NCBI GenBank assembly: GCA_044892525.1
Contig: CM097886.1
Coordinates: forward strand, 28,396,001 to 28,460,000
Reading direction: 5' to 3'
Source: Schmidtea polychroa
Taxonomy: Eukaryota
Length of the DNA: 64,000 nt
Shown: piece by piece, positions 27,570 to 58,630 of the stretch
Layout of the letters: every line of letters begins with the position of its first letter
Numbering within the stretch: the first letter of the stretch is position 1
The notes under the pieces: generated by a model
Told to the model about the DNA's origin: nothing
What the model saw: only the letters and a program-made list of their open reading frames with translations
The model's database searches: none
Program-made: the position numbers and the translations under genes

Positions 27570-30500
27570 TTTGATTGGATAATAATTAAAATAAATTAAA
27601 TTCATTGCAAATTGTGAAATAAATAAAATAAATTGTATTTATATCAAATTTGATTGGATAATAAATAAAATAAATTTAATTCATTACAAATTGTGAAATA
27701 ATTATAATAAATTGTATTTATATCAAATTTGATTGAATATTAATTAAAATAAATTAAATTCATTGCAAATTGTGAAATTATTACAATTAATTGTAATTAT
27801 ATTAAATTTGATTGGATAACAATTAAATTAAATTAAATTCATTGCAAATTGTAAAATTATAATAATTAAATTTAATTATATCAAATTTGATTGGATAATA
27901 ATTTAATTAAATTATATTCATTGCAATTGTGAAATTATTACAATTAATTGTAATTATTACAAATTTGATTGGATAATAATTTAATTAAATTAAATTCGTT
28001 GCAAATTGTGAAATTATTACATTTAATTGTAATTATATCGAATTTGATTGGATAATAATTTAAATAAATTAAATTCATTGCAAATTGTGAAATAAATAAA
28101 ATAAATTGTATTTATATCAAATTTGATTGAATAATAAATAAAATAAATTAAATTCATTGCAAATTGTGAAATTAAAATAATTAAATTTAATTATATCAAA
28201 TTTGATTGGATAATAATTTAATTAAATTAAATTCATTGTAAATTGTGAAATTCGAATAATTAAATTTAATTATATTAAATTTGATTGGATAAAAATTAAA
28301 TTAAATTAAATTCATTGCAAATTGTGAAATTATAATCATTAAATTTAATTATATCAAATTTGATTGGATAATAATTTAAATAAATTAAATTCATTGCAAA
28401 TTGTAAAAAAATTAAAATAAATTGTATTTATATCAAATTTGATTGGATAATAATTTAAATAAATTAAATTCATTGCAAATTGTGAAATTATAATAATTAA
28501 TTTTAATTATATCAAATTTGATTGGATAATAAATAAAATAAATTAAATTCATTGCAAATTGTGAAATTATTATAATTAAATTTAATTATATCAAATTTGA
28601 TTGGATAATAATTAAAATAAATCAAATTCATTGCAAATTGTGAAATTATTACAATTAATTGTAATTATTACAAATTTGATTGGATAATAATCTAATTAAA
28701 TAAATTCGTTGAAAATTGTGAAATTATTACATTTAATTGTAATTATATCGAATTTGATTGGATAATAATTAAAATAAATTAAATTCATTGCAAATTGTGA
28801 AATAAATAAAATAAATTGTATTTATATCAAATTTGATTGGATAAGTATTTAAATAAATTAAATTCATTGCAAATTGTGAAATTATATTAATTAATTTTAA
28901 TTATATCAAATTTGATTGGATAATAAATAAAATAAGTTAAATTCAGTGCAAATTGTGAAATTCGAATAATTAATTTTAATTATATCAAATTTGATTGGAT
29001 AATAAATAAAATAAATTAAATTCATTACAAATTGTGAAATAATTATAATAAATTGTATTTATATCAAATTTGATTGAATAATAATTAAAATAAATTAAAT
29101 TCATTGCAAATTGTGAAATTATTACAATTAATTGTAATTATATTAAATTTGATTGGATAACAATTAAATTAAATTAAATTCATTGCAAATTGTAAAATTA
29201 TAATAATTAAATTTAATTATATCAAATTTGATTGGATAATAATTTAATTAAATTATATTCATTGCAAATTGTGAAATTATTACAATTAATTGTAATTATT
29301 TCAAATTTGATTGGATAATAATTAAAATAAATTAAATTCATTGCAAATTGTGTAATTATTACAAAATTATTGTAATTATTTCAAATTTGATTGGATAATA
29401 ATTAAACTAAATTAAATTCTTTGCAAATATTAAAATTATAATAATTAATTTTAATTATATCAAATTTGATTGGATAATAATTAAAATAAATTAAATTCAT
29501 TGCAAATTGTGAATTTATAATAATTAAATTAAATTACATCAAATTTGCTTGGATAATAATTTAATTAAATTAAATTCATTGCAAATTGTGAAATTATAAT
29601 AATTAAATTTAATTATATCAAATTTGATTGGATAATAAATAAAATAAATTAAATTCATTGCAAATTGTGAAATTCGAATAATTAATTTTAATTATATCAA
29701 ATTTGATAGGATAATAAATAAAATAAATTAAATTCATTGCAAATTGTGAAATTATTACAATTAATTGTAATTATATCAAATTTGATTAGATAATAATTAA
29801 ATTAAATTAAATTCATTGCACATTGTAAAATTATAATAATTAAATTTAATTATATCAAATTTGATTGGATAATAATTTAATTAAATTAAATTCATTGCAA
29901 ATTGTGAAAATATTACAATTAATTGTAATTATTTCAAATTTGATTGGTTAATAATTAAAATAAATTAAATTCATTGCAAATTGTGAAATTATAATAATTA
30001 ATTTTAATTATATCAAATTTGATTGGATAATAAAAAAAAATAAATTAAATTCATTGCAAATTGTGAAATTCGAATAAATAATTTTAATTATATCAAATTT
30101 GATTGGATGATAAATAAAATAAATTAAATTCATTGCAAATTGTGAAATTATTACAATTAATTGTAATTATATCAAATTTGATTGGATAATAATTAAATTA
30201 AATTAAATTCATTGCACATTGTAAAATGATAATAATTAAATTTAATTATATCAAATTTGATTCGATAATAATTTAAATAAATTAAATTCATTGCAAATTG
30301 TGAAAATATTACAATTAATTGTAATTATTTCAAATTTGATTGGTTAATAATTAAAATAAATTAAATTCATTGCAAATTGTGAAATTATAATAATTAATTT
30401 TAATTTTTTCAAACTTGATTGGATAATAAATAAAATAAATTAAATTCATTGCAAATTGTGATAATATAATAATTAATTTTAATTATATCAAATTTGATTG

Positions 30501-33150
30501 GATAATAAATAAAATAAATTAAATTCATTGCAAATTGTGAAATTATTACAATTAAATTTAATTATATCAAATTTGATTGGATAATAATTAAAATAAATCA
30601 AATTCATTGCAAATTGTGAAATTATTACAATTAATTGTAATTATATTAAATTTGATTGGATAACAATTAAATAAATTAAATTCATTGCAAATTGTGAAAT
30701 TATTACAATTAATTGTAATTATTTCAAATTTGATTGGATAATAATTAAAATAAAATAAATTCATTGCAAATTGTGTAATTATTACAAAATTATTGTAATT
30801 ATTTCAAATTTGATTGGATAATAATTAAACTAAATTAAATTCTTTGCAAATTGTGAAATTATAATAATTAAATTAAATTACATCAAATTTGATTGGATAA
30901 TAATTTAATTAAATTAAATTCATTGCAAATTGTGAAATTATAATAATTAAATTTAATTATATCAAATTTGATTGGATAATAAATAAAATAAATTAAATTC
31001 ATTGCAAATTGTGAAATTATAATAATTAAATTAAATTACATCAAATTTGATTGGATAATAATTTAATTAAATTAAATTCATTGCAAATTGTGAAATTATA
31101 ATAATTAAATTTAATTATATCAAATTTGATTGGATAATAAATAAAATAAATTAAATTCATTGCAAATTGTGAAATTCGAATAATTAATTTTAATTATATC
31201 AAATTTGATTGGATAATAAATAAAATAAATTAAATTCATTGCAAATTGTGTAATTATTACAATTAATTGTAATTATATCAAATTTGATTGGATAATAATT
31301 AAATTAAATTAAATTCATTGCACATTGTTAAATGATAATAATTAAATTTAATTATATCAAATTTGATTCGATAATAATTTAAATAAATTAAATTCATTGC
31401 AAATTGTGAAAATATTACAATTAATTGTAATTATTTCAAATTTGATTGGTTAATAATTAAAATAAATTAAATTCATTGCAAATTGTGAAATTATAATAAT
31501 TAATTTTAATTTTTTCAAATTTGATTGGATAATAAATAAAATAAATTAAATTCATTGCAAATTGTGAAATTCGAATAATTAATTTTAATTATATCAAATT
31601 TGATTGGATAATAAATAAAATAAATTAAATTCATTGCAAATTGTGAAATTATAATAATTAATTGTAATTATTTCAAATTTGATTGGATAATAATTTAATT
31701 AAATATAATTCATTTCAAATTGTGAAAAAATTATAATAAATTGTATTTATATCAAATTTGATTGGATAATAATTTAAATAAATTAAATTCTTTGCAAATT
31801 GTGAAATTATAATAATTAATTTTAATTATATCAAATTTGATTGGATAATAAATAAAATAAATTAAATTCATTGCAAATTGTGATAATATAATAATTAATT
31901 TTAATTATATCAAATTTGATTGGATAATAAATAAAATAAATTAAATTCATTGCAAATTGTGAAATTATTACAATTAAATTTAATTATATCAAATTTGATT
32001 GGATAATAATTAAAATAAATCAAATTCATTGCAAATTGTGAAATTATTACAATTAATTGTAATTTATACAAATTTGATTGGAAAATAATTTAATTAAATT
32101 AAATTCGTTGCAAATTGTGAAATAATTACATTTAATTGTAATTATATCGAATTTGATTGGATAATAATTTAAATAAATTAAATTCATTGCAAATTGTGAA
32201 ATAAATAAAATTAATTGTATTTATTTCAAATTTGATTGGATAATAATTTAAATAAATTAAATTCATTGCAAATTGTGAAATTATAATAATTAATTGTAAT
32301 TATTTCAAATTTGATTGGATAATAATTTAATTAAATTAAATTCGTTGCAAATTGTGAAAAAATTATAATAAATTGTATTTATATCAAATTTAATTGGATA
32401 ATAATTTAAATAAATTAAATTCTTTGCAAATTGTGAAATTATAATAATTAATTTTAATTATATCAAATTTGATTGGATAATAAATAAAATAAATTAAATT
32501 CATTGCAAATTGTGAAATTATAATTGTGAAATTATTACAATTAAATTTAATTATATCAAATTTGATTGGATAATAATTAAAATAAATCAAATTCATTGCA
32601 AATTGTGAAATTATTACAATTAATTGTAATTATTACAAATTTGATTGGATAATAATTTAATTAAATTAAATTCGTTGCAAATTGTGAAATTATTACATTT
32701 AATTGTAATTATATCGAATTTGATTGGATAATAATTTAAATAAATTAAATTCATTGCAAATTGTGAAATAAATAAAATAAATTGTATTTATATCAAATTT
32801 GATTGAATAATAAATAAAATAAATAATATTCATTGCAAATTGTGAAATTAAAATAATTAAATTTAATTATATCAAATTTGATTGGATAATAATTTAATTA
32901 AATTAAATTCATTGCAAATTGTAAAATTATTACAATTAATTTTAATTATATCAAATTTGATTGAATAGCAATTAAATTAAATTAAATTCATTGTAAATTG
33001 TGAAATTCGAATAATTAAATTTAATTATATTAAATTTGATTGGATAGAAATTAAACTAAATTAAATTCATTGCAAATTGTGAAATTATAATAATTAAATT
33101 TAATTATATCAAATGTGATTGGATAATAATTTAAATAAATTAAATTCATT
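27570..33150. repeat. AT-rich satellite, 79-bp unit, ~70 copies
   Basis: Unit TTTGATTGGATAATAATTAAAATAAATTAAATTCATTGCAAATTGTGAAATTATAATAATTAAATTTAATTATATCAAA; first two TTGATTGG at 27571 and 27650. Confidence 0.97.
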
Positions 33151-35784
33151 GCAAAAAAAAAAAAAACTCCGCCGTACCAGAGGGTATTTATCGACGAACC
33201 CAGTGGCATTTACTACTGAGTCGGTGCGACTTCCGACGACCCCGCAACATATAATATTGATAGATGTGTGCCAGGCAGTGGCCTGCATACGTCAAGGCTG
33301 TTTGCTCAGTGACATTAAATTTAATAAATTAGATGCAGGACGGATCAAAATCGAAGATCATTCAGTTCGATTTTAACTCATCCTTCAAGCTAAATAGAAG
33401 TAAAAATTTCAAAAAAAAATCGATCGACCTAATCAAATTAAGAATCATATTATAATAATATTATAATAAAATAACATATCGTTCTTACTGAATGTTTCCG
33501 TTGGTTATACAAAATAGCAGTAAAGGTTTTTGGCATAAAGAGTGTTTTTGTGACTAAAAAACATCGGTATATATGCCTATTTTTGTGTGTGCAAATACAC
33601 ATGTGCTCGTTGATGCATTAAAACAAACTCGAATTCTTTTTATTCTAGAATTTTCTATTTTCGATAATTTTCATGGCAATTTTAGTGCCATAATTTTTAT
33701 TTTTATTTTCAAATTTTTATTTTTTAATTATTTTCTGTTAAAGTTGCCTCCATGATGGATTTGGACAATTCCAGAACATTCCATATTAAATTAAAGTTAA
33801 TTTTTATTTTAATATTGTTTTTTCTAAATTCTTTTTTCAAATTTTTATTTTTAAAACTAATTTATTTATTTTTATTAACTTTTGTTGATTTTCATGGCTT
33901 TTATGATGGATGTCGTCATTTTAATAAATGGTTCTAGAATTTCATCTAGAATTTAGTATTTTACTATCTTTCGATATCATTCGAGTCTGTTTTTGTAATT
34001 TTTTTTTATGTTTCTCTGTTATGTTTGAGTTGATTTTCTTGCAATACTTCTTGCATTTGTGAGATTTTATTTAATTTCAATGTTTTATTTTTCTGCTGTG
34101 TTTCTCTTAATTAATATTGTTTATTTGGTGTTTTTATCTTTGTATTTAACTAAACTTATTGTCAGGTATGCATGCTATGTGCTAACACATTTTGTCACAT
34201 TTATAAGATTTTGGGTCTAGAAATCAGTTCTAGCCCAACACTTATATAGTTAACAACTTATATTGTTATTAAATCATTTTATTAACCTTACATCAATAAT
34301 CAACATTGTCATTAACTGCTACCATACTCGAGTCCTCTATCACTTGTATCGTTAACCATTTTGGTTATTATTACCTTAATTTTATCTTATTACCCTTATA
34401 TTACTAACGTACATTATGATCAATCAAATCATATTAGCCACCCAATTTACTCATGGTATTCTCGACTTAGTTTAGAATCACCTCAATTTATCCTATTAAC
34501 CTCATATTGTTAACTCATACCTTAATAATATTCAGATGACGTTATTTATAATAACCATATCTTCCTTAATACCCTATCCCGTATAAACATGATAAGTGAC
34601 TCATATTTCACCCTAACTATGTATTTCCTTTTAATCCATCATCAACTATCACCAAACTATCCTATCTCACATTCAAACTATTGAATTTATAATAACCCAT
34701 CTCATCAGGGTCTCACAAAATTCCACAAACTGAATGACGATAGACTTCAATTAATTAGATTATAAAGTTATTCATTACTTTTTTTATTCCTTACCTTGTG
34801 TACGGGTTGCAAACTAGGCTATAGCTATATTGTTTGAAGTGTATAAATCAATTTTTTTTAATTCTTAACAGCAAAATCTATCCAAGGTAAATACCATGAA
34901 CTGACCCATAAGCCAAATGTTCAAACTATAATACTTACTGTTATGTGCAAGAAAACTAATATTCGTGCAATTGCTTAATTGTGGATATAATAGGTATATA
35001 GTTGTTATTGTATTTTATATTTATGTTCGTTGGTGTGAGTGTGCTAAGGAAATTTGATGAACCCAGCCGAGTCACCAGTAAATGAACTGTCTCGGGACAG
35101 CTGGGTGAATGTATGTGGTGCTATATTAATACAAGTAAACTAACGATAACAATTATCAACTTCCAACTTTTATTTATAAAATAATGTAAAGACCTTTAAT
35201 CGCCAAGATAGAGTTCGTTCGACGTCAAATAGGTGGTAATTATATCTCGTGTACAACTGCTAAATTCTTTGAAAACGAAATGTGGATATTTTTCTGATTC
35301 TCGTTCTTCCTTATTTTTATCGTAATAATTTATATTTTCGATTTGGTCCAAATTTAATTTTGGAAATTGAGACTTTCGAATGAGTCTCGTATAGAAAAGT
35401 CAAAAATATAATGTTGTCACAAAAATAAGTCAAATAGAATATAATATTTGGATAAGTGATATGAATGGAAGTAATATTATCTCGGGATGATTATTTCTTC
35501 TTTGAATTTGGTACAAATTTGGTGAAATGAGAATTTACAAATAATAGTTAAACAGCAATAATATCTTTAGTTTTTTAATTTCTGTATTCTTCTATCGATT
35601 TTTTTTAATGTTTTTAATTTAATTTTTATAATTTAATTTTTTAAATTTTTTTTTAAAGTAATCTATTACTATAGAGAATTGCTATATAGACTTTTTTTTG
35701 GATCTCGGAGGCTGTTACCCGAATTGAGTTAACTAATATAATTCATAATGGTATTAAAAAAATATACCCAAAACATTAACTTTA

Positions 35785-36417: not shown

Positions 36418-39104
36418 TTTGACAAATAAAATTATAAAAAAGAACGACATTTTGCAAAAGTTACTTTTAGTGAATCAAATTTTAAAATTTAATCGAGAGT
36501 TGTTTTTTATAAAAGTTTTTTTTTGTGAATTTTTACTGTTTTGGCTTTCAGTTTGTTCGTAATAAATGTAACTTGCAAACTTTAATTTAGAATTATATAT
36601 CTAATTTTACTTCGTTCAAATAAAAAGACATTAAAGAACTCCCACTTTTTACTTGTTTTTATTTCAACAGAGTGAGGCAAGATAAGTAAAGCAGTAAGAA
36701 GAATTTAGTTATCACCTGAAAGAACCAGATTTGTATGAGCGGATAAAATGCTTTTCTAAACTCAACCAACATTTAATAGTGAAAAGTAAATCTTTTTGTA
36801 TTACAGTGCTGGCGTGTGATTTAGATTGAAAAGGAGCTAGAAATTGACTTCAGTTAAATTCAAAAAGTTTGAGATCTTCTCAGTTGATTTCAAAAATGAT
36901 CATTTTAGTCGTGAGGCTTCTGGACCATCAGAGAATAGAAGAAATTCACCGGGCATGATTGAGAGTAAAACGACTATCATGTCTTAACAACCCGTGTGAG
37001 CACCATCAGCGTTACCGAAAAGATAAATTATTATTTTTTTAAATCTCTGTAATGAAAGGTATAAACAAGAATAAACCTAAGGTATAAACCTAAGGACTTT
37101 CCATTGCATAAAACTTTTTGTTAGACACTTATTCTAACAATATACACTCCTCCACGAAAAACTTAGACTTTTCCGCCATGAATTCAATTATTTAATTTTT
37201 AATTAATTTTATGTTCAATAAACCGTTTCATGGAAATCCGATTCTTTATAAATTCAAAGATCTTCTGGAACTTTTAAATATTGGTAAATTCGAGAGTTTT
37301 TTTTTGTTCATCTCTGATTTATCTTTGTTTTCCTCTAAAATTTCTTCTTATCTACATTTCGACAATAGATCGTTGTTTCAATTGTTAAAATATTTAAATA
37401 ACACTTGATAAGGGCAGTGCCGAAAATTTGAAATAAATAAGAAAAAAAATGAAGATAATCGGAATTCAAAAGTTAATACTTGACAATTTTTAAATGTTTC
37501 GAGTGTTGGGCTAGAACTGATTTCTAGACCCAAAGTTGGGAATGGGACGAAATGTGTCAGTACACAACACGCATACCCAGCATTAAGTTTACTTAAATAA
37601 AAATATATAAAACACCAAGTAAACAATGATAATAGAGAGATAATATACCCAAAAATAAAACATCTGAATTAAAAATAAAATAAAACACGAGCAAGAAGTA
37701 TTACACGAAAACTTACTCAAATATAACCGAAAGACATAAAACAACAAAAAACAAATTCGAATAAAGGCGATTAGTAAAAATTAAAAAAAAAAAATTAAAG
37801 AAAATCTTCATAAAATCTTACGTAAAGAAAATTATATCGATATTTTGAATAAAAATCCAGAACAATTCATAAAAATGGCGAAATCCATCATGACGGCCAA
37901 ACGACCCAATAAAATTTATAAAAAATAAATATTTTAGTTTAAAAAATAAATATTTTAGAAAAGAAATCATAAAAAACAATTTAAAAATAAGAAATAGATT
38001 GAATTTAGCATGGACTGTTCTGGAAATGCTGAAATCCATCATGGAGGCAAATTTAATAAAAAATAATTCGAAAATAAAATTTCAAAAATAAAAACAAAAA
38101 TTCTTACTGAAAAATCGCCATCAAAATCGATAAAAATTAAAAATCGAATGTTCGAGAATTAAAATAATCTGAATTTGTTTTACTGCATCAATGCACGCAT
38201 GTATACTTACACGTCAAACAGAGGCTATATAAACTAACACATTTCGTCACTTTTTAAGCAAAGAAAAAAAAATGCAAATGAATATTTTTACTCTTATGCC
38301 AAATTTTTGGTTTTGATTTTTCTGAGATTGTAGGTAAGGACGATTTCATTGTGAATTATAAATTATTATTATTGAAACCTTGTTTTCATTATTTCTTTTT
38401 AACTATAGAAATGTAGGTTTGAGTGAGATCGTCGGTTATCATTGATTTTGAAGCGAGATCCCAGTCAACCCTGCACCTATGCACTTCATCATCGATGAGT
38501 AAACAGCCCACAATGATCGCAGGCCACTGCCTGGCACGCACTTATCAATATTATTGGTTTTTTTTGTTCAGGTCATTCGGAGGTCGCACCACTTCATGGT
38601 TCTGCCATGGAGTTAAGTCGATGAAATCCTCCGTCTGACTCTACCTATTTATTATAGGTCAGCCGTAAAGGGTTGACTTACCACACAACAGTAAGGTTTG
38701 TCGTAGTGGTCACAGTGGGGCCGCGAAAGCAAACACTCTTCCCGACTTTCAATACATGAATAACTTACATAGTTAAAATCTACATCCAAAATCATCACAA
38801 TACAATACACTAAGGTTAATAAACAGAGTAGATCTCAGACCTAAATTAATCACAACTCTACAACTCACAATTAATGTAGACGGTTAAATATCATCAAAAA
38901 CCAACTCTACCTATACGTTTGTCGAATCTAGATTTATAAATGTCCTAAATAAATTTTCTAGTAATAATGTAAAGTAAAGATTTTTTTCTAAATGATTGAT
39001 TTAGTAGCGATAGTATTCATAAAGGTGTTCGACATGCGTATCGGCAAGACTTGGATTTTAAATTGAATAGACTCTGAACTAACTATAAAAATACAAATCG
39101 TAAA

Positions 39105-40010
39105 CCCATAAAAGTATAAATTATCATCTCAATTGCATAAAAATATGAATTATACTTATAGATTTAATTTCTTCAAAATATAAATTATGATTAGTTATAA
39201 AGGTATAAATTACAAATTTAATTTTTCAAAAATATAAATTACAAGTTTATATTGACTGTAAAATTATAAATTATAACTCTAAGTTAATTACAAAAGTATA
39301 AATTATAATCCTAATTTCATAAAAATATAAATTATAATTAGTTATAAAAGTATAAATTATAAATTTAATTTCCTGAAAATATAAATTACAAATTTACATT
39401 GACTATAAATTATAAATTATAACTCTAAGTTAATTACAAAAGTATAAATTATAATCCTAATTTCATAAAAATATAAATTATAAATTATAACTCTAAGTTG
39501 ATTGTAAAAGTATAAATTATAATCTTAATTTCTTCAAAATATAAATCATGATCTTAAAAGTATAAATTATAAAATTATATTAGCTACAAAATATAAACTA
39601 TAAATTTACCTTAACTTCATAAAAATATAAATCATAAACTTAAAAATATAACTTATAAAATTATATTAGCTTTAGAAATATAAACTATAAATTGAACTTC
39701 ACCAAATATAAATTATACACTTAAAAAAAAAAAATAAATTATAAAATTATATTAGCTTTAAAATATAAACCATAAAATTAGCTTCATAAAAATATAAATT
39801 ATAAACTTAAAAATACAAATTATAAAATTATATTAGCTTTGGGAATATAAACTATAAATTGAACTTCACCAAATATAAATTATAAACTTAAAAGTATAAA
39901 TTATAAAATTATATCAGTTCTAAAATATAAACTATAAATTTAACTTCATAAAAATATAAATTATAAAATTATATTAGCTTTAAAATATAAACTATAAATT
40001 TAACTTAACT
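39105..40010. repeat. Degenerate AT-rich tandem array inside the LTR (copy at ~54658-55563)
   Basis: Repeated AAAATATAAATTATA / AAAAGTATAAATTATA / TTATATTAGCTTT modules. Confidence 0.85.
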
Positions 40011-40346
40011 TAGATTGCCTTTAACATCATAGTTGAAAATTTTTCATCAAAGACCCCCCATAAACCATATAGTCATCAACTACCACCTAAATATACTAAA
40101 TTAGCTTATCTTAATATATATTTAACTTATATTATATTTTAAAATATAAATTGAAAATTTTCATAAATGACCCCCCTTCAAATTATGTAGCCATTAACTA
40201 TTCCTTAGGTATACTGAATTGTATCATCTTCGTATAGAGTCAAATTATATTTCAAACCAAAAAAAAAAAAAAAAATAATAATTCCATAAATTTTCGTAAA
40301 TGATCCCCCCCCCATATGTAGTAATCTTATAAAAATATAAATTTAC

Positions 40347-40377
<31 letters not shown>

Positions 40378-41177
40378 GTTATTATTATTATTATTATTAT
40401 TATTAGCATTGTTACCAGTAACATTATCACTCTTACTATTATTATTACTATTATCATTATTATTATTATATTATTAAAATAATTATCTTTATTTCATAAA
40501 AATAAAATTATAAAACAAATTATTGATTTTGGGATTCCCCTATCTCTAAATTTAGTTTCAATGGCCCTATCTTCCAATAAAATTACGGAAAATCACTAAA
40601 ATCTATTTTTAGTAACACCCCCCCCCTGAAAACGACATCAATATTATTAATTTAAATTATATCCATATATGTATATATGTGTGGGTGTATATGTATGTGT
40701 ATATATAAGTGGATGTGTGTATGTACATACCGATTTATAAAACAACCTTATAACCATACGATAACCTTCCCCCTCAAGACCCCTGTTATGTAATGGTCAC
40801 AACCCCTTTAAGGTGATGGAACGAGGATAGAGTAGTTTACTGAAGTAATTTAGTAGAATCATTTATTAATTTATTAAAATTATTGGATTTATTTTTAACT
40901 AGATCAAAAGAAGAAAAAGAAAAACAAAGACTAAGTTTATTGATTTCGATCATCAAATTTATTCACATAATTGTTTCTTTGAATCATATTCATACCAAAA
41001 AGTCCTTCGAGCTCAGTTGATGGACCATCCCGATGAAATACATTTCCTGGGGTTGGAAAATGGAAAACTTATATTAAAATATCTTTCAGAATTTCTTTTA
41101 GATTTCCACAATTAAATAATTCCAAATTATTTCTCACAAATATATTCGATCAAAAAGAATTTTAATATTTTATTTAA

Positions 41178-41846
41178 TTACAACATCCTGAATTTATTTC
41201 TTTGCTTGGCTGCTTTAAGATCATAAATGGGCATTTTTCATTTATTAATCGGATAAGATCAGTTTTTCTGTACAACCTTTACATTCTTCACCCCAGCTTT
41301 CTAATATTTTTTGAGATCTTTAACGCGAGCTTTGTTTAGATTAATACCAGTAAGATCAATAGGTTTGTCTGAAAAATAGTTGAATTAATATTTAAAATCT
41401 TAACTGAACATACCATATTTTAATTCACCAATTTGTGCATCAATTGCTTTTAGTTTTTCAGACTTTTTCAGCGGGCATAACCCAACTCAAAGGCCGAGAC
41501 AAATGTTTTACAATATATGCAGTAGATGTTACCAATCCTCCAATATAATAACACTAAAAATAAATTACAATTTTATAGTAATCAGTTATAATACCTTACC
41601 AGACTTTATTCTTTTCCTTTACTTGTTTTGCTCATCTTTTTGAATTTATTTTCAATATTTTCGATATTTGTACTTTCATCTCCATCTAGACTATCTTTCA
41701 GGCGTCTCACAAACTTAACACAAACTGAACAATTTTTAAATATAATAAAAATAAGTGCCAAATACCTTCGCAATTATTTTCATTAACTGTAGCTGACATT
41801 ACATAGTAAACAATGATTAGAAAAGAAAAACTGATAAAATTTTCAT
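41178..41846 (-). pseudogene. MANF: Captured MANF/ARMET gene copy, 4 exons, disabled (in 5' LTR)
   Basis: Reconstructed MKILSVFLFLIIVYYVMSATVNENNCEVCVKFVRRLKDSL...[38 protein letters not shown](C)[66 protein letters not shown]; GT-AG introns 41725-41765, 41554-41599, 41369-41413; one nonsense codon, a 2-bp deletion and several 1-bp homopolymer deletions. Confidence 0.92.
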
Positions 41847-42870
41847 TGCAAAATATTACTAATATAAAAAAAAATGGTTTGTTAAAAAAAAATAATTAGT
41901 TAAAACAAGTTTAAAATACTTCAAACTGACGTATAAGTTTTGTTTAAAATGTAAGTAACGAGTATTGTAAAATTAATTTAATATTATTATAAATTTTGAA
42001 TTAAAATTTTCTTAAAATTCTAGAAAAAAAAAAATCTATTATTAATAGAAAACAAATTTTTAAAAATAAATAAAGTTTGAGTCAATTTGAATTTTCTAGA
42101 AGTATCTCTTAAAATTATATAGGGAATTGTTTTGTAACAGTTATTGATGTATTTTGAATTTATTTAACTTGAATTAAAAATATAATATTAACAAAAATGT
42201 ATTGTGAGATTTTGATTGTTGATCTAACCATCTCTCTATAACTACCCGGGCTCAACAAAGGGGAGTGTCATTGTAGGTCAACTAGGACAGTCATAGTCAC
42301 CGCGAAATACGCTTAGTCAAATAATACGCGGTCATAAACAATCATGGTTCTTGTAAAGTTATTATATTTTGTTGTTGTGGTTGGTGAAATTTCTGACCCT
42401 TATTTGTATGTTCACTAATATATAAGTTGTTTGTTTTTTGATTATTTTCTAATTAAATTCATTATTCCCAAAAATTTCTTAAGGTATGTTTAATAAACTT
42501 TGGCTATGTTTCACTTAATTTGTGGTATTGTATGAACAGGTTTTAATGGATTAATGTATGATTCCTGATGACTTATGATCGTTTGAGGATAGAAAGTTTG
42601 TATAGGCATAGTTGAGAAAGTAATTATAATAAGGGACCTGCGTAAATCGGACATATATCTTCTAACGATAGTCCGTGAACCCCGTAGAGTGCTCGACAAT
42701 TACAGTGCAAGTAGTGCGCTCACTTTTTGCGAGCACTCACCCTCTTGATACAGTACCAACGTTGATCATTCAACGGGTATCAAGCGGTAAACAATGTTGT
42801 ATCTTGGGTTACGCTGGTAACAGCACTAAAGAGCAAAATATTTGATCATCAGTAACCCACCATACAAATT

Positions 42871-42888
42871 TGGGGGCTCAGCCGGGAT
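42871..42888 (+). promoter_or_regulatory. Primer-binding site, tRNA-Pro-like
   Basis: TGGGGGCTCAGCCGGGAT, 16/18 match to the canonical TGGGGGCTCGTCCGGGAT, 8 nt after the LTR end. Confidence 0.85.
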
Positions 42889-43749
42889 ATTTAAACTTTC
42901 TTGGTAAAGAACCTGTAAGTAGACGGGAATGCATAGCAGTTTTTTGATCAGGAAATGAAATGCTTTATGCAAGAGTAAGAAAGATTGTTTTCTCAAATAA
43001 CTAGACATGATGTGTGAATATGCGTGTATGATCAAAATGAATGTTGAATGTTGTACATGATGAATAAAATGTTTTAAATTATGTAAATATAGAAAATCGA
43101 TAAAACTGGGTATGAGAATAATGTATGAGCGTTCCGTGTTGATGGGACAGAATGTTGATGGGTAAGAAATGAAATAAAAATCAAAAATAAAAAAAATTGT
43201 AAATATAAACAACTAATACTTTGGATATAAGAAAATAATAAAAAATTCAAAAATAGGGAAAAGGGGGGGATAGAAAATAGCGGTATATAGAAAAAGGGGA
43301 TAAAGCATAAAACAGTGAATTGCGAAATAGAAATAGATAGGTGATGCAATTAATTAAAAATAGGGGGAAGATGTAAAAATAAGTTAAAGATTAAAGGGTT
43401 ATATTGAGTACTTGATCAAATGACTAAAATTATGGACACGCTGGGATCAAAAGGGTTACGTAGACTAAGATAATAAACTAGAGGGAACGGATAAAAATGT
43501 GCGGAACATCATTTAATGGATTGGGAGCCTAAACTAACAGGGTAAAACAGCTATTGAACTTACTTAATTTGAATAAGGAAATAAATGGGTAGAGGTAAGC
43601 TAATTAAAGGGGAATAAGAACACTTAATAAAATGCTGAATTAATAAAGTATAACTTGATGGAATTAACCGGCTACATTATAAAGAAACTTGAAAATTCGT
43701 AAATTTAACTAACAACTCACTACAAAGATTGAATTGAAAAGCAGAGCAG

Positions 43750-44161
43750 TTGGCAAACATCCAAGAAGGACTGATCTTAAAACCAAGACCAGTTGATGAT
43801 GAATTGTGTATAATGACGAGAATTGCTACACCAAATGTGGAATTAACTACTCAAAGAGTATATCAGATTCAGAATTTACGTTTAGATAAGGCCAAATTTA
43901 ACATCAAATGGCAAGAATTAAAGATAAAAATTTAAACGGTTGAAGATGCGATAAGAGAGGCGATCGATAATGAGTTCAAATGTTGTGTGTGTAGAAGCAA
44001 TGAGATAAAAATAATGATGGTACATTGCGGACATCGATGTTATTACCAAGATTATGCATTGAAACTGAAACCATTGTAATGTATGTGATGCAAACGTGAG
44101 AGAAAGAGTAGTAGTGTACCTCCCTAAGGGAGATGTAGAAAAATTAAAGATGATGAAATGA
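43750..44161 (+). pseudogene. Decayed RING-finger (C3HC4, IAP/MDM/neuralized-like spacing) ORF
   Basis: In-frame continuation past TAA at 43933 gives CCVCRSNEIKIMMVHCGHRCYYQDYALKLKP, then after a 1-nt frameshift CNVCDANVRERVVVYLP; two expected Cys are TAC/TAT. Confidence 0.75.
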
Positions 44162-44878
44162 ATTGCTGCTGAGTGTGAGTTAGTAAAAAGTTAGTAAAAC
44201 TAATTCCATAATAGCAACCGAAAGGTATAAAACATACGTTGAACATAGACATATGAAATACACAAAAGCCGTTAAATAAATAGACAAGCAACACACAAAT
44301 TAAATTGGCGAAAGCCGTGAATTAAATACAGGACTGGCTGGGATCGCATCAAGTGTGAGTTGATCTATAAGATCAGTACGATTACCATTTTTTTTCCTGT
44401 TTTTGTTTTATTATTTTTGGCATAGAGAGACAGGACCATAAGGGGATGAGAAGCATATCGTCCCTACGATGCTTACACGGATGGGGAAATCCTGATCACC
44501 TTGATGAGAAGAGTATAATTGGGCCCATCGCAAATGTTGGAGAGTTTCTGTCGAGTGACTGATCACCACTTGTGGGAAATGAACCAACGCGATTATTATA
44601 TTTTTTGAATTTGGGAGACTAGGACAAACTAGAAGGGTAAATAAAAAGAAAAAGATAAAAATAAAAATTGAAAATGTGCACCAAAAGATTAAAAATTAAC
44701 ATTATCCGAGAGCAGCTGCGGATTTGAAGAAACCGTTTTTGGACTTCAAATCGGATGAGGAGTACTCATTGATATGAATTTTTCCCTAGCGAGTGATGAG
44801 GCACCCGAGTACAGCGGCTAACCACCGGACTGTAGTGTCCAGGAGATTATCAGCCAAGGGACTGATGATGCTGGATCA

Positions 44879-45450
44879 CCCAATACAAAAACCCGGATAC
44901 CACACCGAGTATTGGGCGCACTTTTTTGAGTTGCTAGCGGGACTTGATACAAAAACCCGGAAGGGTAGCGAGCGAGAGAGACCCAGTTACCTACACCGAG
45001 TATTAAGGAGCCCAGTGAAACGGTTGTGAGATGCGGGTCAACCGGTAAAGGACTCGTACTCAACAGGCAACCAAGATTGGACCAGTTGTGAGGCGGAGGA
45101 CCGAAAGTCAACTGCATATCCAATTTCCTTTTATCTTCACTAGTCGGGAGATCTGGTTCATCACTTTTGAGAATCAGGATCGAGGCGATTAGATATTTCC
45201 GTGTTTTTTAAATCCTGATAGATAGGATGTTTTTTCTTCGTGATTATTGCTAGCAGGGGTCGGTACAAAACCCGGATGCCCACACCGAGTACCGATAGGC
45301 CCAGTGAAACGGCAATGAGATTAGAGTTACCGGTATTAGGCTCTTTTCAATAGGCGGCCAAGAATTGAGCCAGTTGTGAGGCCTCAGCAGATTAGGAATT
45401 TGAGTAGGAGGAGCCTTGAATTTTTAATTGGTCCGAAAGTCAACTGTCAA
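44879..45450 (+). other. Repeated structured-RNA-like modules in the 5' leader
   Basis: Three copies of stem-AAAA(A)CCCGG..ACACCGA-stem with different but complementary closing stems; two copies each of CCCAGTGAAACGG..ACCGGTA and CAGTTGTGAGGC..CCGAAAGTCAACTG. Confidence 0.6.
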
Positions 45451-45560
45451 CTCAATTTAATCGCGGTAGGGACGATAGTAGGTGTAAAAACCGAAAGCGT
45501 CGAGGGGTTGAAGAAACCTCATTTAGGGCATTTGAAACCGGTCAGGGACCGAAGACCGCG

Positions 45561-45880
45561 AATATGGCGTAATGGTGTAAAAGCCCAGACGTCGAGGAGT
45601 CGTAAAAGACTTCAGATTATGATTAAACCGGCCGGAAGCCGATGCCAACGTAGAGGTCTAACAAACCAAAGCGTTGATGGGTAATAATGGATAATATGGC
45701 GTAATGGTGTAAAAGCCCAGGCGTCGAGGAGTCGTAAAAGACTTCAAATTATGATTAAACCGGCCGGAAGCCGATGCCGACGTGGAGGTCTAACAAACCA
45801 AAGCGTTGATGGGTAATAATGGATTATATGGCGTAACGGTGTAAAAGCCCAGGAGTCGAGGAGTCGTAAAAGACTTCATG
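45561..45880 (+). repeat. ~2.4 tandem copies of a 132-bp unit
   Basis: ATATGGCGTAA recurs in units starting at 45561, 45693 and 45825. Confidence 0.9.
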
Positions 45881-46842
45881 GGATTAAAATGAGTTGATTA
45901 AACCGGCCAGAGAGCCGATGGTAATTGAGTGAAATGATTTAAATGAAATAAGAGAGTTAATTAAACCGGCCAGGGAGCCGATGGTAAATAAATGTAGACG
46001 CAGAGATCGCGCGAACCAAAGCATCGATGATTAACTATAAACAAACGATTAAGATGAAATTGATTAAATTGAATAGATTAAGTGCGACAAAGATGTAATG
46101 AGTAAAGGAAAATTATGATAGAGCGCCGGCGCAAGAGAAACTGAAGCCAAATTTTTGAATGGGGAAAAGCGAATGAGGAGACATTAATTAAGTTACTGAT
46201 GAGTTTTATATGTATATGACTAATGATATATATTTTCAATTATATAATTGATGTTGTGATTATATGATAGATAATTGATACGACGATATAGATAATTGAT
46301 ACGAGTTATAGATAATTAAAAATGGACTTAAATTCAAAGGGGGTGAGTAGCAAAAAGTAAAAGCGTACCATGAATTAGAAAAGGAACAGCGAGAGAAATA
46401 ATGAGTAAAGAGTAGTATAAAATAAAGAAAATAGGGAAATAAATGAAGGGTAGGATAAAATGAATAAAATATTATGATATGTACTAGGAGTGTTAATTAT
46501 TTTAGAATAAGTCAATCAATAAGTCAGAAGGAAGTCAATACAAGCCAAGAATTCAAGAGAAATAAAGAGAAATCAAAAATTCAAAAGAAATCAAATAAGG
46601 AATCAAGAGAATCAAACGAGGATAAAAGAAAGCTAAACAAAGTCAAATTAAATAACAAGAGGAAAATTAAAGCGTTGGCCAACGAAACACAGTGAAATTC
46701 AAAAGGGATTATTAAAGCAAGAAAAATTGATAATAAAGCCAATCGAACGAGATCGCCGAGCAAAGGAGGCTCTAGTTTATTAGGAAACGCAGGGAGACAA
46801 AGAGCCAAGAGAAACAGAAGAATCAATAAGAAACCAGCGTCA

Positions 46843-48573
46843 GTGAAAACATTATTTGAATCAGACAGCTTAACCAACGAAAGTGAAAACAGCGACGATA
46901 TTAAAAGAAACGAATTATATCCGGTAACTGATATCAAACCAACAGACAAGGAAGATAGTAGTTCAGGCATAACAAGTTTGTGTCGAGATATAATGTTAGA
47001 CGGAAACCAAGTGAACAACCCGAATGGGTCAGAGTCGACATACACACCCGAGATAAACCATGTCAACGTCAATGTTGGAGAATTTAGAGAAAGATTTCGA
47101 GGAGAACCATTCGATGGGAATATTAATGAACTAGAAACGTTTATAAAAGAATTCGAGGTATATATTACGATATGTCACTGGCCAGACATAGTCGTACGAG
47201 AGCGAATACCATTATATTTAAGAGGAAGTGCACAAGATGTATATTTAGAGGCAAAGTGTGATGCAACAAAACTAAAAACATGGAAATCAATAAAGAATTT
47301 TTTAATAAAAACATTCGGTAGCAAAAGGGAAGTAAATCGCAAAATGTTGGATTTTCTGCATCGAAAGCAGAAATACAATGAGTCAAACGCACTATATGCA
47401 TGTGAATTAAGACGACTGGCAAAAGAAGCATTCGATTCAAATCAAACAGTTCCGGAAGACAAGATAATAGCCGTATTCGTAGAGGGTATGAAAAGAAAGG
47501 ACATACGAGCAACAGTGGGTTGCCGAGCACCAGACACGCTCGAGGAAGCATTAAAAATCGCTAATAAATGTGAAAACTACTTGACTCCAGTACAAGTAGC
47601 AGCAATGGCAGCAGTACCAATAGCTACAACACCAACAACGACAACCGAAATTAATCAAACCAACAATGAAAATCTAGGAATGAATCAATTTATCTCAGAA
47701 TCGCAACAGTTGTTCAAGGCGCCAAAAACGACAAATCCAGATAACAGAGGTAATATTCAATTTTACACTAATAATTTCAGGAGCAACGAGAACAATAATC
47801 AGAAGTGTAACATATGTCAACGACTAGGACATTGGAGCAACGAGTGTTATAAGACAAGGATGTGCCAAAATTGCGGTAAAAGGGGGCACACAGAAAATAT
47901 ATGCCGAGGACCAATGATGTCGATGAGAGGAGGAAGGACTAGAACCTGCTACAGTTGCAACCAACTTGGACATGTGGCGAGAGAATGCGCAATGAGGACA
48001 AAACATAATCAACCAAGAGCAAACGATCCAAGTCAAAATATACAAGTCAACATCATGCAGGAAATTGAACAGTTGAAAAAGATGATCCAACGGATACCAG
48101 AGGATATCCAAAAACGACCAACAAGAGAACAACAAGATCAGCAACGAATCGAGGGGCAGAGACCACTAAACGAAAAAGCCAGAGAAATTCAAAAAAAATG
48201 GAAAAAGCGAGAAACCAACACCGGAAGAATAAATATGATGAGATTAATGAACAAAGGGGAACCGCACACTGCGGAGCAGTGTGTTAACAAGGAAGGGAGC
48301 GATATGACCGTAATCAACGAGACAAAAGTGATAAAAGAAAATGGGTCACATCAATTGACGGAGCAATTGACAGAACTGAGTAGCGAGGATAAAATAAAAA
48401 TAATACAAGGGTTCACCAAAGAAGAAAAAGAAAAGAGACGAAGAAGAGATGAAACAGGCACGAACCAAAAAGCAACGAGATTGTTACAAAGAATCGAATT
48501 CAGAGGGTATTACTACAAAAAATTGAAGATAGAATTAGAAGAGAAGAACCAAATTTTACGGATGAGCAAGTAA
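46843..48573 (+). CDS. gag: Retrotransposon Gag with three CCHC zinc knuckles
   Basis: Capsid-like PFDGNINELETFIKEFE..W..IPLYLRGSAQDVY; knuckles CNICQRLGHWSNEC, CQNCGKRGHTENIC, CYSCNQLGHVAREC. Track start is GTG; first ATG near 46993; the frame is open back to a TGA at 46693. Confidence 0.92.
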   Translation: MKTLFESDSLTNESENSDDIKRNELYPVTDIKPTDKEDSSSGITSLCRDIMLDGNQVNNPNGSESTYTPEINHVNVNVGEFRERFRGEPFDGNINELETFIKEFEVYITICHWPDIVVRERIPLYLRGSAQDVYLEAKCDATKLKTWKSIKNFLIKTFGSKREVNRKMLDFLHRKQKYNESNALYACELRRLAKEAFDSNQTVPEDKIIAVFVEGMKRKDIRATVGCRAPDTLEEALKIANKCENYLTPVQVAAMAAVPIATTPTTTTEINQTNNENLGMNQFISESQQLFKAPKTTNPDNRGNIQFYTNNFRSNENNNQKCNICQRLGHWSNECYKTRMCQNCGKRGHTENICRGPMMSMRGGRTRTCYSCNQLGHVARECAMRTKHNQPRANDPSQNIQVNIMQEIEQLKKMIQRIPEDIQKRPTREQQDQQRIEGQRPLNEKAREIQKKWKKRETNTGRINMMRLMNKGEPHTAEQCVNKEGSDMTVINETKVIKENGSHQLTEQLTELSSEDKIKIIQGFTKEEKEKRRRRDETGTNQKATRLLQRIEFRGYYYKKLKIELEEKNQILRMSK

Positions 48574-48653: not shown

Positions 48654-51392
48654 ATGCTGAGACAAATACAGAATGATCAGGCGGACCAGGAAGACGAGAA
48701 AAGTGCGGTGAGTAGCCTGAGAAGTGAATTATTTCAATCAAGTGATGAAAATAATGAACAAGGAACACCTCAAAATAACGAAGAGGGTGAGAGCGACGAT
48801 ATGGAATCACCGATAGAAACTGACGATGAGGAAATATTTGAGGAAATTTCCGACACGGTATCGGAAAGAGAACGAAATGAGAGCTATATCAACGAACCAA
48901 CATACAGAAAATGTATAAAACTGATAACTGAAGCATACCAGTGGGAAGGAGGTATATTAACGGCAACATGGAAAGATTTGGTGACGAAATATAAAGGAAA
49001 ATTGAAAGAAGTCGAGCCAGATCAATGCCGGGTGAGTATTCAACACCCCGAAACTCAGATGCAGATTACTGAATTAAAAGTAACAAATATTGATGAACTG
49101 TATATTTGGGTACAGGAAAAGAATAAACAGCTATACGACAATTGTTATAAAGTTAAAATGAGCATACATCTAGTAGATATGATGAGATGGCCAAACGAAG
49201 TTAATATCTTAATCTTAAAGAAAAACAGAGACAGCGAATCAGTAACGGAAATACTGAGGAAAATCCAACAGATATTCAACAATGAAGTGGAACCAGAAAT
49301 AGAAAAGACTGAACAAAAGATAATGAAGGAAAATCAAATAATCGTAGTAAAACAAGCAATCGATCAAGCGAAGAAATATATTAACAGATTTAGGGAAAGA
49401 TGGCCGCAGCTAATGAAACAGTTTGTCAAAGACGTACGGGATACTGAGATTATGGGATTTGAATATAAACGAGCAACGGAGTTGATATCAAAATATGGTG
49501 AATACGAGAGAATCAGATGTGAACAAGAATTACCATGGCCATCCAACAGAAAAGTGACAATAGTAAGAGAATCACTGAAGAATAGTCATTTAAATAAACA
49601 CGAAGAAATGATCAAAACATCACATGTCGAAGACGACATTTTTGGAAAAGGCCGGAGTGGAAAAAATGACAAAGACCATAACGACAAAAATGAGGAAGAC
49701 GACGGGAACCATGAAAGGAACAACATAAATGGGAACTCAAACGAACGAGATAATGAAGAAGACAAGGAGTCAGAAGATGACGACGAAGACTTGAAGGATA
49801 CTGAGGACAACTCAGACCAAAGTGAAGACAACCAACATAATGAAACAGAGAACGACAAACGAAAGTCCCCACTGCATAACATAGTAATGCGGAAGAATCT
49901 AAACCAGTCACTCCTACTACAAATTATCCTAATAATACTAACGTCAATTTGCCTAACAGAAACGAAAAATACGCGAATTACGAGAGGAAATCTGAAAGAA
50001 GGCGAACTATTCATGATAAAAGTCAGCGGCAACAACGGAAACGCGGTCGGGATATGCATCCAATTGATGGAAGGAACCGGAGTAAGTTGTGATTTTAGAA
50101 CGATAACAAAAGGGAGGATTTTCAATAGTCAAAATGTAGAACCTGAATTATGCGGAGACTACAACATTTGCGAAGACATAACATCAGAAGAAAAAGAATT
50201 GGAAAGAGCTAACGAAACCGGAGTACATGTCGCAATTAAAGCTACAATGGAAGGTATCGAAATAATAGATAAAGGAAATTTGCCAACAACGCAAATATGT
50301 TTTAGAGATGACGAAGACATATGTATAACGGTGGACATGAAACGAGATCGCGAATTTTTTTGGACAAACGTAAAACCAAACACCAACATGGTGGTATGCG
50401 CAGGTACCCAGGCAATAGTGGTATGTAAAGCAGTTAAAACCGCGCAAATAAAAAGCAGGCCAAAAAGTATGGCTAGTAAACGATATCAACCAAGGATCAA
50501 ACCGGCAATTAAGAAACGCCAGAAACAATCCCGTAGGGGAATGATAAGAGGACAGCACCAAACCAAGAAAAACAAAACAGTAATATGGATCAAAGATGAG
50601 AGACGAGAAGTACTAGTAAATGTCGAATTCAACAAGAAAAGAGAAGAAGTAATCACGGTCAGAAACCAAGGTGAAGAACCAATAGTAAGAGTATGTGTAC
50701 TAAACAGGACAGGAATAGTCGACTGCATAGAAACACTACTTGACAAAGGTGCAGAAGTTAAAATGACAATAGGAGAAAGAAAGGGACGATATCACATATG
50801 CGTTCTTAAAAACGGAAGCGATTTAAGTTCATGCCAAGCAATAACCAGACAACGACCACGGATGATAAACATACTATTGACAACCAGAAAACCAAAAGAA
50901 GTGGAAAAGCCAAAAGGAAACGAACATCTAACGGCAGAAGAAACGAAACAGTTATACCAGATGCTCAAGAAAAATAAAACACAAGAGGCAACTACAACAG
51001 AAACTAAAATGATGATAACGACAGGAAAATTCAACGAGACACTGATAACCGTTAAAATGATGTGGATCGCTAGCGCAATAATGAGTGTAGTGATAGCATC
51101 AATAATAATCCAATGGATAAGAACCTCCAAAATATGTAAACAAAAACCTAAAGGCAGAAAAAGATGGCCACAAGTGGAGAATTCCGAATATGGTATTCCA
51201 ACAGAAAACCCGAATCCAGAAGAGTACGAAGCGATTGAAGATCCAAGGTCAAGCAGACTATGGACGCAAGAATTACTCAGAATACAAACCCTAAACGATT
51301 GGGTAAACGAATTTGACATATACCGGCTAACGGATGAAAGATATGGGGGGATGCGCACATTGCATTCAGGTCCCCTGGCAACAATGGTATAA
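48654..51392 (+). CDS. 912-aa ORF2: acidic N-terminal half plus type-I membrane glycoprotein (Env-like) module
   Basis: Signal-peptide-like MRKNLNQSLLLQIILIILTSICLT from ATG 49887; Cys-paired beta-rich ectodomain with six N-x-S/T sequons; TM MMWIASAIMSVVIASIIIQWI; tail with YxxI motifs; no RT, RNase H or integrase motifs. Confidence 0.75.
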   Translation: MLRQIQNDQADQEDEKSAVSSLRSELFQSSDENNEQGTPQNNEEGESDDMESPIETDDEEIFEEISDTVSERERNESYINEPTYRKCIKLITEAYQWEGGILTATWKDLVTKYKGKLKEVEPDQCRVSIQHPETQMQITELKVTNIDELYIWVQEKNKQLYDNCYKVKMSIHLVDMMRWPNEVNILILKKNRDSESVTEILRKIQQIFNNEVEPEIEKTEQKIMKENQIIVVKQAIDQAKKYINRFRERWPQLMKQFVKDVRDTEIMGFEYKRATELISKYGEYERIRCEQELPWPSNRKVTIVRESLKNSHLNKHEEMIKTSHVEDDIFGKGRSGKNDKDHNDKNEEDDGNHERNNINGNSNERDNEEDKESEDDDEDLKDTEDNSDQSEDNQHNETENDKRKSPLHNIVMRKNLNQSLLLQIILIILTSICLTETKNTRITRGNLKEGELFMIKVSGNNGNAVGICIQLMEGTGVSCDFRTITKGRIFNSQNVEPELCGDYNICEDITSEEKELERANETGVHVAIKATMEGIEIIDKGNLPTTQICFRDDEDICITVDMKRDREFFWTNVKPNTNMVVCAGTQAIVVCKAVKTAQIKSRPKSMASKRYQPRIKPAIKKRQKQSRRGMIRGQHQTKKNKTVIWIKDERREVLVNVEFNKKREEVITVRNQGEEPIVRVCVLNRTGIVDCIETLLDKGAEVKMTIGERKGRYHICVLKNGSDLSSCQAITRQRPRMINILLTTRKPKEVEKPKGNEHLTAEETKQLYQMLKKNKTQEATTTETKMMITTGKFNETLITVKMMWIASAIMSVVIASIIIQWIRTSKICKQKPKGRKRWPQVENSEYGIPTENPNPEEYEAIEDPRSSRLWTQELLRIQTLNDWVNEFDIYRLTDERYGGMRTLHSGPLATMV

Positions 51393-52524: not shown

Positions 52525-53057
52525 AATCTTCAAATCTAGAGCCGTCATCGAGATGAGATCCCAAACAACCGAGTGTATAAATCCTGATATAAACCGACAA
52601 TGATCCTGATATAATCTGACAACGATCTTGAGTTGATTGAAAATGTTCTTATTATGTGTTGACAATGATCCTGATTCGATTGACAATGATCTGAAAATGA
52701 TCTAAATTTGATTTAACAATGATCCTGACATGATTCGACAATGATATGATTTGACTATTATTGTGATTTGATGCCAATATTATATATTACTTTGATATTA
52801 TTTGAGCATAACAATTGGATTAAATTTTGTGTGGACCGACCGTGGTCTTCTTTCTCTTCATCTTTAAACCAATCTGTAGCATGTAGCGTATCAGTAGAAA
52901 CTTTTTATGTATGTGGGTATTGAGGTCACGACCCTGTAGCTCGTGGACCCAATTACATGTAGGCACTTGTAATAAAGTGCAACCAATTCTGTCTAATTAT
53001 ATCTTGAACTGTTGATTAAATTGCGGGTCGCAATTTTATGGGCCCCCGAGTGTTTTA

Positions 53058-55899: not shown

Positions 55900-55933
<34 letters not shown>

Positions 55934-58418: not shown

Positions 58419-58630
58419 CGAGTTACGACAAAGACATGATTATAAAATGATGATTGATGCATGAAAATAATTAAATTTAATTAAAAATAATTTATTAATT
58501 AAAATATTTCATCTTATTTGAATATAATTTCAAAAAGACTTCTGAAAGTAATTACGATAATATTCACTCATCAGAATTGCTAGTGTACCCCTAAATTTTA
58601 TTCAAATTAATAAAACTTGACAGTTTTTAT

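Follow-up and report, generated by a model that had tools for sequence, protein, structure and literature searches.

A probable intron-bearing MANF/ARMET gene copy carried antisense in the long terminal repeats of a planarian gypsy-type element without pol

Introduction

In maize, 425 intact long terminal repeat (LTR) elements contain gene fragments, and Bs1 is also known as a carrier of host-gene sequence (PMC2774510). The planarian element described here, whose LTRs contain a decayed copy of a MANF/ARMET gene, shares with these plant retrotransposons the trait that host coding cargo is carried and amplified, usually in a non-functional state, whereas the cargo of the plant elements is usually a fragment in the internal region and that of the planarian element is gene-length, intron-bearing, antisense, placed within the LTR and found in an animal (PMC2774510). 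In the rotifer Adineta vaga, Penelope-like elements mobilise intron-containing host genes, and an antisense template is argued to be compatible with the retention of introns (PMC3846280). Here too a retroelement framework carries a host gene with all of its introns; the rotifer case, however, involves the Penelope-like class, pseudo-LTRs and an intact gene that replaces the body between the repeats, while the planarian MANF copy lies inside a true LTR and is decayed (PMC3846280).

The closest described system in planarians is Burro, which in the secondary account of Grohme et al. 2018 given in PMC6431247 comprises giant gypsy-like elements of dugesiid planarians, more than 30 kb in length, which encode a gag-env-pol polyprotein of about 4,900 aa. 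According to the same account, Burro elements contain the host-like domains BIR, BCL2-like, MATH/TRAF and ankyrin, in sense orientation and in frame (PMC6431247). As far as that account describes Burro, the planarian host, the gypsy type, a CCHC gag with an envelope-like region behind it, tandem repeats in the interior and the presence of host-like domains are common to both, whereas the MANF-bearing element is 20.9 kb long, consists to one half of LTR, has separate gag and ORF2 frames, lacks pol, and carries its cargo antisense and non-coding in the LTR (PMC6431247). The MANF-bearing element is thus not Burro by size or coding content.

Two further groups of reverse-transcribing elements bear on the locus, the family to which its cargo belongs being the MANF/CDNF (ARMET) family of secreted proteins. 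Non-autonomous LTR elements of the LARD and TR-GAG types, which are described mainly in plants, comprise LTRs, a site resembling a primer-binding site (PBS) and optionally gag, contain no pol and are moved in trans. The planarian element has in common with them the LTRs, the PBS-like site, the gag, the absence of pol and recent activity, but neither type is known for carrying a whole intron-bearing host gene in its LTR. In retroviral oncogene transduction, the host sequence is sense, intron-less, internal and expressed. The planarian cargo resembles transduced oncogenes in being host sequence gained by a reverse-transcribing element, plausibly through read-through and template switching, and differs from them in being antisense, intron-bearing, located in the LTR and dead.

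A literature search found no published link between MANF and retroelements. The combination of gene-length cargo with introns, antisense orientation, a position inside a true LTR and an animal host sets this locus apart from the systems above; the capture of host genes by retroelements is itself already known.

Results

The window, which denotes the whole 64-kb stretch of DNA that was analysed, has a GC content of about 25–30%, mini-introns and abundant gypsy elements, in keeping with a dugesiid planarian near Schmidtea mediterranea (PMC11410931, PMC6431247). It contains an intact single-exon kinesin-14 gene (60681–62606) encoding 641 aa, the product of which is 97% identical without gaps to a UniParc protein and 80% identical to a protein of a Logan assembly, the next named relatives being those of cestodes and trematodes. 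This match places the window in a dugesiid planarian near to, though apparently distinct from, the one from which the UniParc protein derives. An open frame of 901 aa (17279–19981) lies in an A-rich region and showed no Pfam match and no similarity to the gag, the ORF2 or the gag relatives described below, and a fragment of the C-terminal dimerisation domain of a hAT-family transposase (E = 1.7e-6) is found at 3212–3454. No tRNA genes were detected in the 64-kb window and no Rfam families in the whole of it, and exact database look-ups of ORF2, the kinesin and one gag relative returned no record.

A complete LTR retroelement of 20,915 bp occupies positions 37504–58418 on the plus strand, and is assigned to the gypsy/Ty3 type by its gag. 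Self-comparison delimits a 5′ LTR of 5359 bp (37504–42862, plus strand; TGTTGGG...CCCACCA) and a 3′ LTR of 5361 bp (53058–58418, plus strand), which together make up half of the 20.9-kb element, and comparison of the flanks reveals the 4-bp target-site duplication CGAG on the left (37500–37503) and on the right (58419–58422). The MANF/ARMET-like copy (41178–41846, minus strand) lies at LTR offsets of about 3675–4343, around 1 kb from the 3′ end of the LTR, and an identical twin is present in the 3′ LTR at 56734–57402 (minus strand). As the repeats end exactly in TG..CA, are flanked by the CGAG duplication and enclose a gag on the plus strand, they represent genuine LTRs, within which the MANF copy runs opposite to the element; this bears out the antisense placement in both LTRs proposed in the initial annotation. 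The two LTRs are 99.93% identical and differ by two indel events and no substitutions. Because substitutions between them are lacking, the insertion is extremely young.

At its centre, the LTR is pieced together from tandem repeats and a microsatellite, an arrangement without counterpart in the older LTR relatives. The centre includes an AT-rich tandem-repeat block (39165–40006, twin at 54718–55559) identified by repeat analysis, and a microsatellite of the TTA type (40322–40490, with a twin in the 3′ LTR), at the edge of which a 3-nt indel constitutes one of the two LTR differences.

Further copies of LTR sequence occur in the window. A third copy of the 3′ end of the LTR (63329–64000, minus strand; offsets 4707–5359, 653 bp) is 95.8% identical and has the same 3′ boundary, and is cut by the window edge before the MANF part would be reached. 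Its inverted 3′ end is abutted at 63297–63329 by a 33-nt LTR start in plus orientation, a junction that looks like the insertion of one family member in the first 33 nt of the LTR of another. Older LTR-related fragments in the window, which are 66–81% identical, share the LTR termini only and contain no MANF-like sequence, and for this reason the MANF cargo may be limited to a young sub-lineage or to this single element. Two diverged inverted LTR ends (33180–34240 and 24418–24712) have an order and orientation that fit one inverted LTR, their flanking 4-mers being different (AATA vs CTTA), and may form one old LTR with a satellite at its centre and no MANF. The satellite between them (27565–33155) is AT-rich, has a period of 79 bp in about 71 copies and shows a 158/237-bp higher-order pattern. 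A tandem array with a period of 675 bp is present in three units at 14392–16360, and since its unit is about 66% identical to LTR offsets 99–687, part of the 5′ region of the LTR also exists as a satellite-like array.

Between the LTRs, the element encodes two intact frames on the plus strand. The gag (46843–48573; 576 aa) has a Ty3 capsid-like domain, which at 28.9 bits is just below the Pfam cut-off of 29.1 for Ty3_capsid, and a zf-CCHC match (E = 3e-11), with three knuckles of the form CX2CX4HX4C found by reading the translation. Its database relatives are 50–57% identical and contain Retrotrans_gag, and in one of them the gag is followed by a retroviral protease (RVP); scans of metagenomes and viral contigs with the gag were empty. 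ORF2 (48654–51392; 912 aa) belongs to no recognised family, with no significant match in Pfam or among solved structures, and begins with an acidic part, continues with an internal hydrophobic segment and a Cys-rich part, and ends in a transmembrane-like segment, on which account it may be envelope-like. Over its first 112 aa it shows 43% identity to what follows the gag in another relative (P0019). As a stretch like the start of ORF2 and a protease thus follow the gag in relatives, the gag–ORF2 order is a family trait and relatives bearing pol exist.

The scanned plus-strand stop-free pieces of the element of at least 60 aa gave no match to a protease, reverse transcriptase, RNase H or integrase, nor is there any pol-sized open reading frame, and the element is therefore non-autonomous, a point that had escaped the earlier reading of the locus. 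A PBS-like stretch of 17 nt that starts with TGG is found on the plus strand at 42871–42887, 8 nt after the 5′ LTR, the window offering no tRNA for comparison, and no purine-rich tract is present directly upstream of the 3′ LTR (52990–53057) despite the youth of the element. With the tract missing and the PBS-like stretch set 8 nt off the LTR, the replication signals are atypical. The leader between the PBS-like site and the gag (42863–46842) is unusually long at 4 kb, reaches a GC content of 42%, contains a 132-bp tandem repeat (45561–45878) and gave no protein-family match in the scanned plus-strand pieces.

To characterise the antisense insert, its three minus-strand frames were cut at stop codons, and the resulting pieces were searched one by one against Pfam and solved structures. 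Five stop-free pieces, distributed over the three frames, had the saposin-like ARMET_N (PF20145) or the SAP-like ARMET_C (PF10208) domain as their best family, and their order along the DNA is collinear with that of the profiles, on one strand and within 670 bp. The ARMET_N pieces scored 30.2, 35.3 and 13.3 bits and jointly cover profile positions 1–93 of 96, and the ARMET_C pieces scored 14.6 and 34.1 bits and jointly cover positions 2–29 of 43, positions 30–43 having no match among the pieces of the region. The curated Pfam cut-offs are 26.9 bits for ARMET_N and 23.5 bits for ARMET_C, and three of the five pieces exceed them unaided.

Among solved structures, the chains matched by the five pieces are almost exclusively those of MANF and CDNF. 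The E-values range from 0.0001 to 0.4, which is weak for each piece taken singly, the pieces being short, and jointly the matches cover residues 5–133 of the 158-residue mature human MANF in order. The CxxC, CYYIG and CKGC landmarks are seen in these alignments, where CKGC is paired with the human CKGC. A sixth piece, corresponding to the C-terminal tail of the copy, had no match in the Pfam and structure searches. On the minus strand from 41846 to 41178, the copy has an ATG at its start and a stop codon at its end, and its four exons, separated by three mini-intron-like spacers, join to 537 nt or 179 codons; human MANF likewise has 179 aa and four exons (PMC8568515). The earlier proposal of MANF domains spread over four exons thus agrees with the ARMET_N and ARMET_C matches, the presence of CYYIG and CKGC and the joined length of 537 nt, and on sequence grounds the region is identified as a gene-length MANF/ARMET copy with homology far above chance. 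In place of the signal peptide that had also been proposed, there is a hydrophobic N-terminus after the ATG, which is itself interrupted.

The twin in the 3′ LTR is the only other MANF-like sequence found in the 64-kb window. HMMER, run with a 42-aa piece of the copy against 1.84 billion representative proteins, returned one spurious repetitive match only, a word-indexed protein search with a 55-aa piece, the length filter of which leaves out full-length MANF, gave no candidate, and a metagenome scan with a MANF piece was empty.

The three spacers, all of which sit at breaks in the MANF homology, are of 41 nt (41725–41765, start GTATTT), 46 nt (41554–41599, start GTAAGG) and 45 nt (41369–41413, start GTATGT) on the minus strand. 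Their 3′ ends are pyrimidine-rich and terminate in CAG or TAG, and their GC fraction is 0.17–0.20 as against 0.25–0.34 in the exons. The matched residues of human MANF run from 47 to 51 across spacer 2, with exactly three codons remaining on its upstream side, and from 97 to 98 across spacer 3; by this continuity both are insertions relative to the protein, and the frame switch between the flanks of spacer 2 is explained by its 46 nt. For spacer 1, the spliced and the unspliced readings both place a CxxC where the ARMET_N profile begins, and the spliced one is favoured only because it is linked to the upstream ATG and the hydrophobic N-terminus, so that intron 1 appears the weakest of the three and is not forced by the profile match. 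All three introns given in the initial annotation (41, 46 and 45 nt) are accordingly present as GT..AG spacers, the removal of the second and third restoring continuity and the first being less certain. The proposed fit to the size of host mini-introns also holds up, as a neighbouring host gene with a weak match to DUF4698 (CCDC60-type; exons 1675–2326) contains GT..AG spacers of 44 nt (1806–1849) and 50 nt (2030–2079), the removal of which restores its frame, and the spacers of the MANF copy fall around the lower limit of the 45–85 bp peak of short introns in planarians (PMC13594981).

The MANF copy contains one premature stop that is not caused by a frame change, and two frame changes backed by consecutive profile matches in different frames, a number that rises to as many as five when the reading is made to take in both the start codon and the C-terminal tail. 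In alignments to solved structures, two of the eight conserved cysteines have given way to other residues, and the remaining six are retained or can be traced. The longest open stretch of the joined exons is at most 65 codons in any frame, and a continuous open reading frame of about 170–180 codons with a signal peptide is absent. All candidate frame changes adjoin runs of A or T, of which the 0.67-kb MANF region contains 11 of at least 5 nt together with several frame changes, whereas the gag, ORF2 and kinesin frames (6.4 kb in total) contain 37 such runs and not a single frameshift; the lesions of the MANF copy are therefore real. The copy is a pseudogene and its lesions are not assembly errors, and the stop, frameshifts and two lost cysteines reported earlier were recovered here, the stop as a single one, the frameshifts as two to five frame changes and the cysteines as two out of eight. 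Given many lesions in the copy and no substitutions between the LTRs, the gene was dead before the present insertion, and the copy most likely has no protein-level role today; any effect it may have would act through RNA. With the MANF/CDNF family of ER-stress-induced secreted proteins, it shares the ARMET_N to ARMET_C order, the landmarks, the four exons and the length of about 179 codons known from human MANF (PMC8568515), but it has a broken frame and lacks two of the eight conserved cysteines, and is not a functional member.

Discussion

Taken together, the passenger of the LTR is probably a near-complete, intron-bearing genomic copy of MANF, acquired in antisense orientation by an ancestor of the LTR and now dead cargo of a gypsy-type element that lacks pol. 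We infer both its capture from the host and its propagation by the family. The ancestor of the LTR lineage would have acquired unspliced genomic DNA of the planarian MANF gene, either at the DNA level, when repair or recombination placed it in an LTR of a resident copy, or by read-through transcription across a neighbouring, opposite-oriented MANF locus followed by template switching in reverse transcription. As the insert is antisense, its splice sites would not be presented in the RNA of the element and would go unrecognised there, and the introns would thus survive reverse transcription, as they would in no other orientation; the design of retroviral vectors routinely follows this principle. 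Since every cycle rebuilds the LTR at either end of the element, the insert, which we guess is probably located within U3, would be copied to both ends every time and be present twice per element. The dead gene would then have been carried as neutral cargo through at least one round of transposition, an autonomous relative providing the enzymes in trans.

Several other explanations have to be weighed against this reading. That the resemblance to MANF is a chance product of AT-rich DNA has a negligible probability: although the single pieces are short and their structure E-values weak (0.0001 to 0.4), three of them pass the Pfam cut-offs independently, which rules out chance similarity, and, within 670 bp of a single strand, all of the five keep the collinear order and include the CxxC, CYYIG and CKGC landmarks. 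Almost as hard to credit is an intact and functional MANF paralogue in the LTR with a promoter of its own, in which the frame changes would be homopolymer errors of long reads. Such errors would account for the A/T run beside every candidate frame change, and the frame changes cancel out over the joined exons, whose 537 nt are divisible by three. The premature stop and the two cysteine changes, however, are substitutions and not indels, the 37 comparable runs in 6.4 kb of neighbouring open reading frames are free of frameshifts, and both LTR copies agree, for which reasons an origin of the frame changes in assembly errors was rejected.

It is likewise very unlikely that the 5.4-kb repeats arose when a host region with the real MANF locus was duplicated, either segmentally or in the assembly, with a gag-bearing element lying between the two copies. 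The unusual length of the repeats and the absence of both a canonical polypurine tract and pol would be compatible with such a duplication, but this origin was rejected: the repeats have exact ends with TG..CA and a 4-bp CGAG flank duplication, the same 3′ boundary recurs in the third copy at 63329, a PBS-like TGG stretch stands beside the 5′ repeat, both termini recur in the diverged copies, and the MANF copy is badly damaged, which a single-copy essential host gene would not be. An unlikely alternative, though the least improbable of those considered, would make the LTR element only a secondary carrier: a different gene-capturing mobile element, for example a Helitron or a Pack-type DNA transposon, would have brought in the MANF block by inserting itself into a resident LTR ahead of the last transposition. 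The mix of tandem repeats and microsatellite at the LTR centre, absent from the older LTR relatives, is consistent with nesting, and the hAT transposase fragment elsewhere in the window indicates that DNA transposons are present in the genome; around the MANF block itself, however, there are no terminal inverted repeats or flanking duplications, and no other gene fragment or transposase-like piece lies beside it.

Under the favoured reading of an antisense genomic copy acquired by the LTR ancestor, the question arises whether the MANF copies are inert. They might act through U3-containing transcripts complementary to MANF pre-mRNA, or through a captured MANF promoter firing from the LTRs, and in either way feed the PIWI/small-RNA system of planarians, but this is considered distinctly improbable. 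Each U3-containing transcript would offer several hundred nucleotides of complementarity, and antisense or small RNAs directed against the host MANF are possible as a matter of pure inference, dependent on the identity of the copy to the functional gene and on transcription. No ERSE or ERSE-II motifs of the vertebrate ER-stress type were found in the LTR, and there is thus no sign of a co-captured stress-responsive promoter. Were such effects real, the level of an ER-stress factor would be coupled to the activity of a mobile retroelement, or the silencing of the element to the expression of MANF.

Retroelements normally strip introns from their cargo, and the rule that antisense orientation protects introns rests so far mostly on engineered vectors and Penelope elements; a MANF copy that bears its introns after the LTR life cycle would be a natural illustration of it. 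In its present state, the finding amounts to one decayed passenger in one element, which is of interest to transposon biologists and involves no new mechanism. It indicates that cargo can be accommodated in the giant LTRs of gypsy-type elements in planarians, and if the diverged ends at 24418 and 34240 belong to one LTR, the cargo at the LTR centre would vary within the family, with MANF acquired by a sub-lineage. Should copies prove numerous, RNA complementary to MANF would have a dispersed source in this family, which could also serve as a marker to date its own activity across Schmidtea species.
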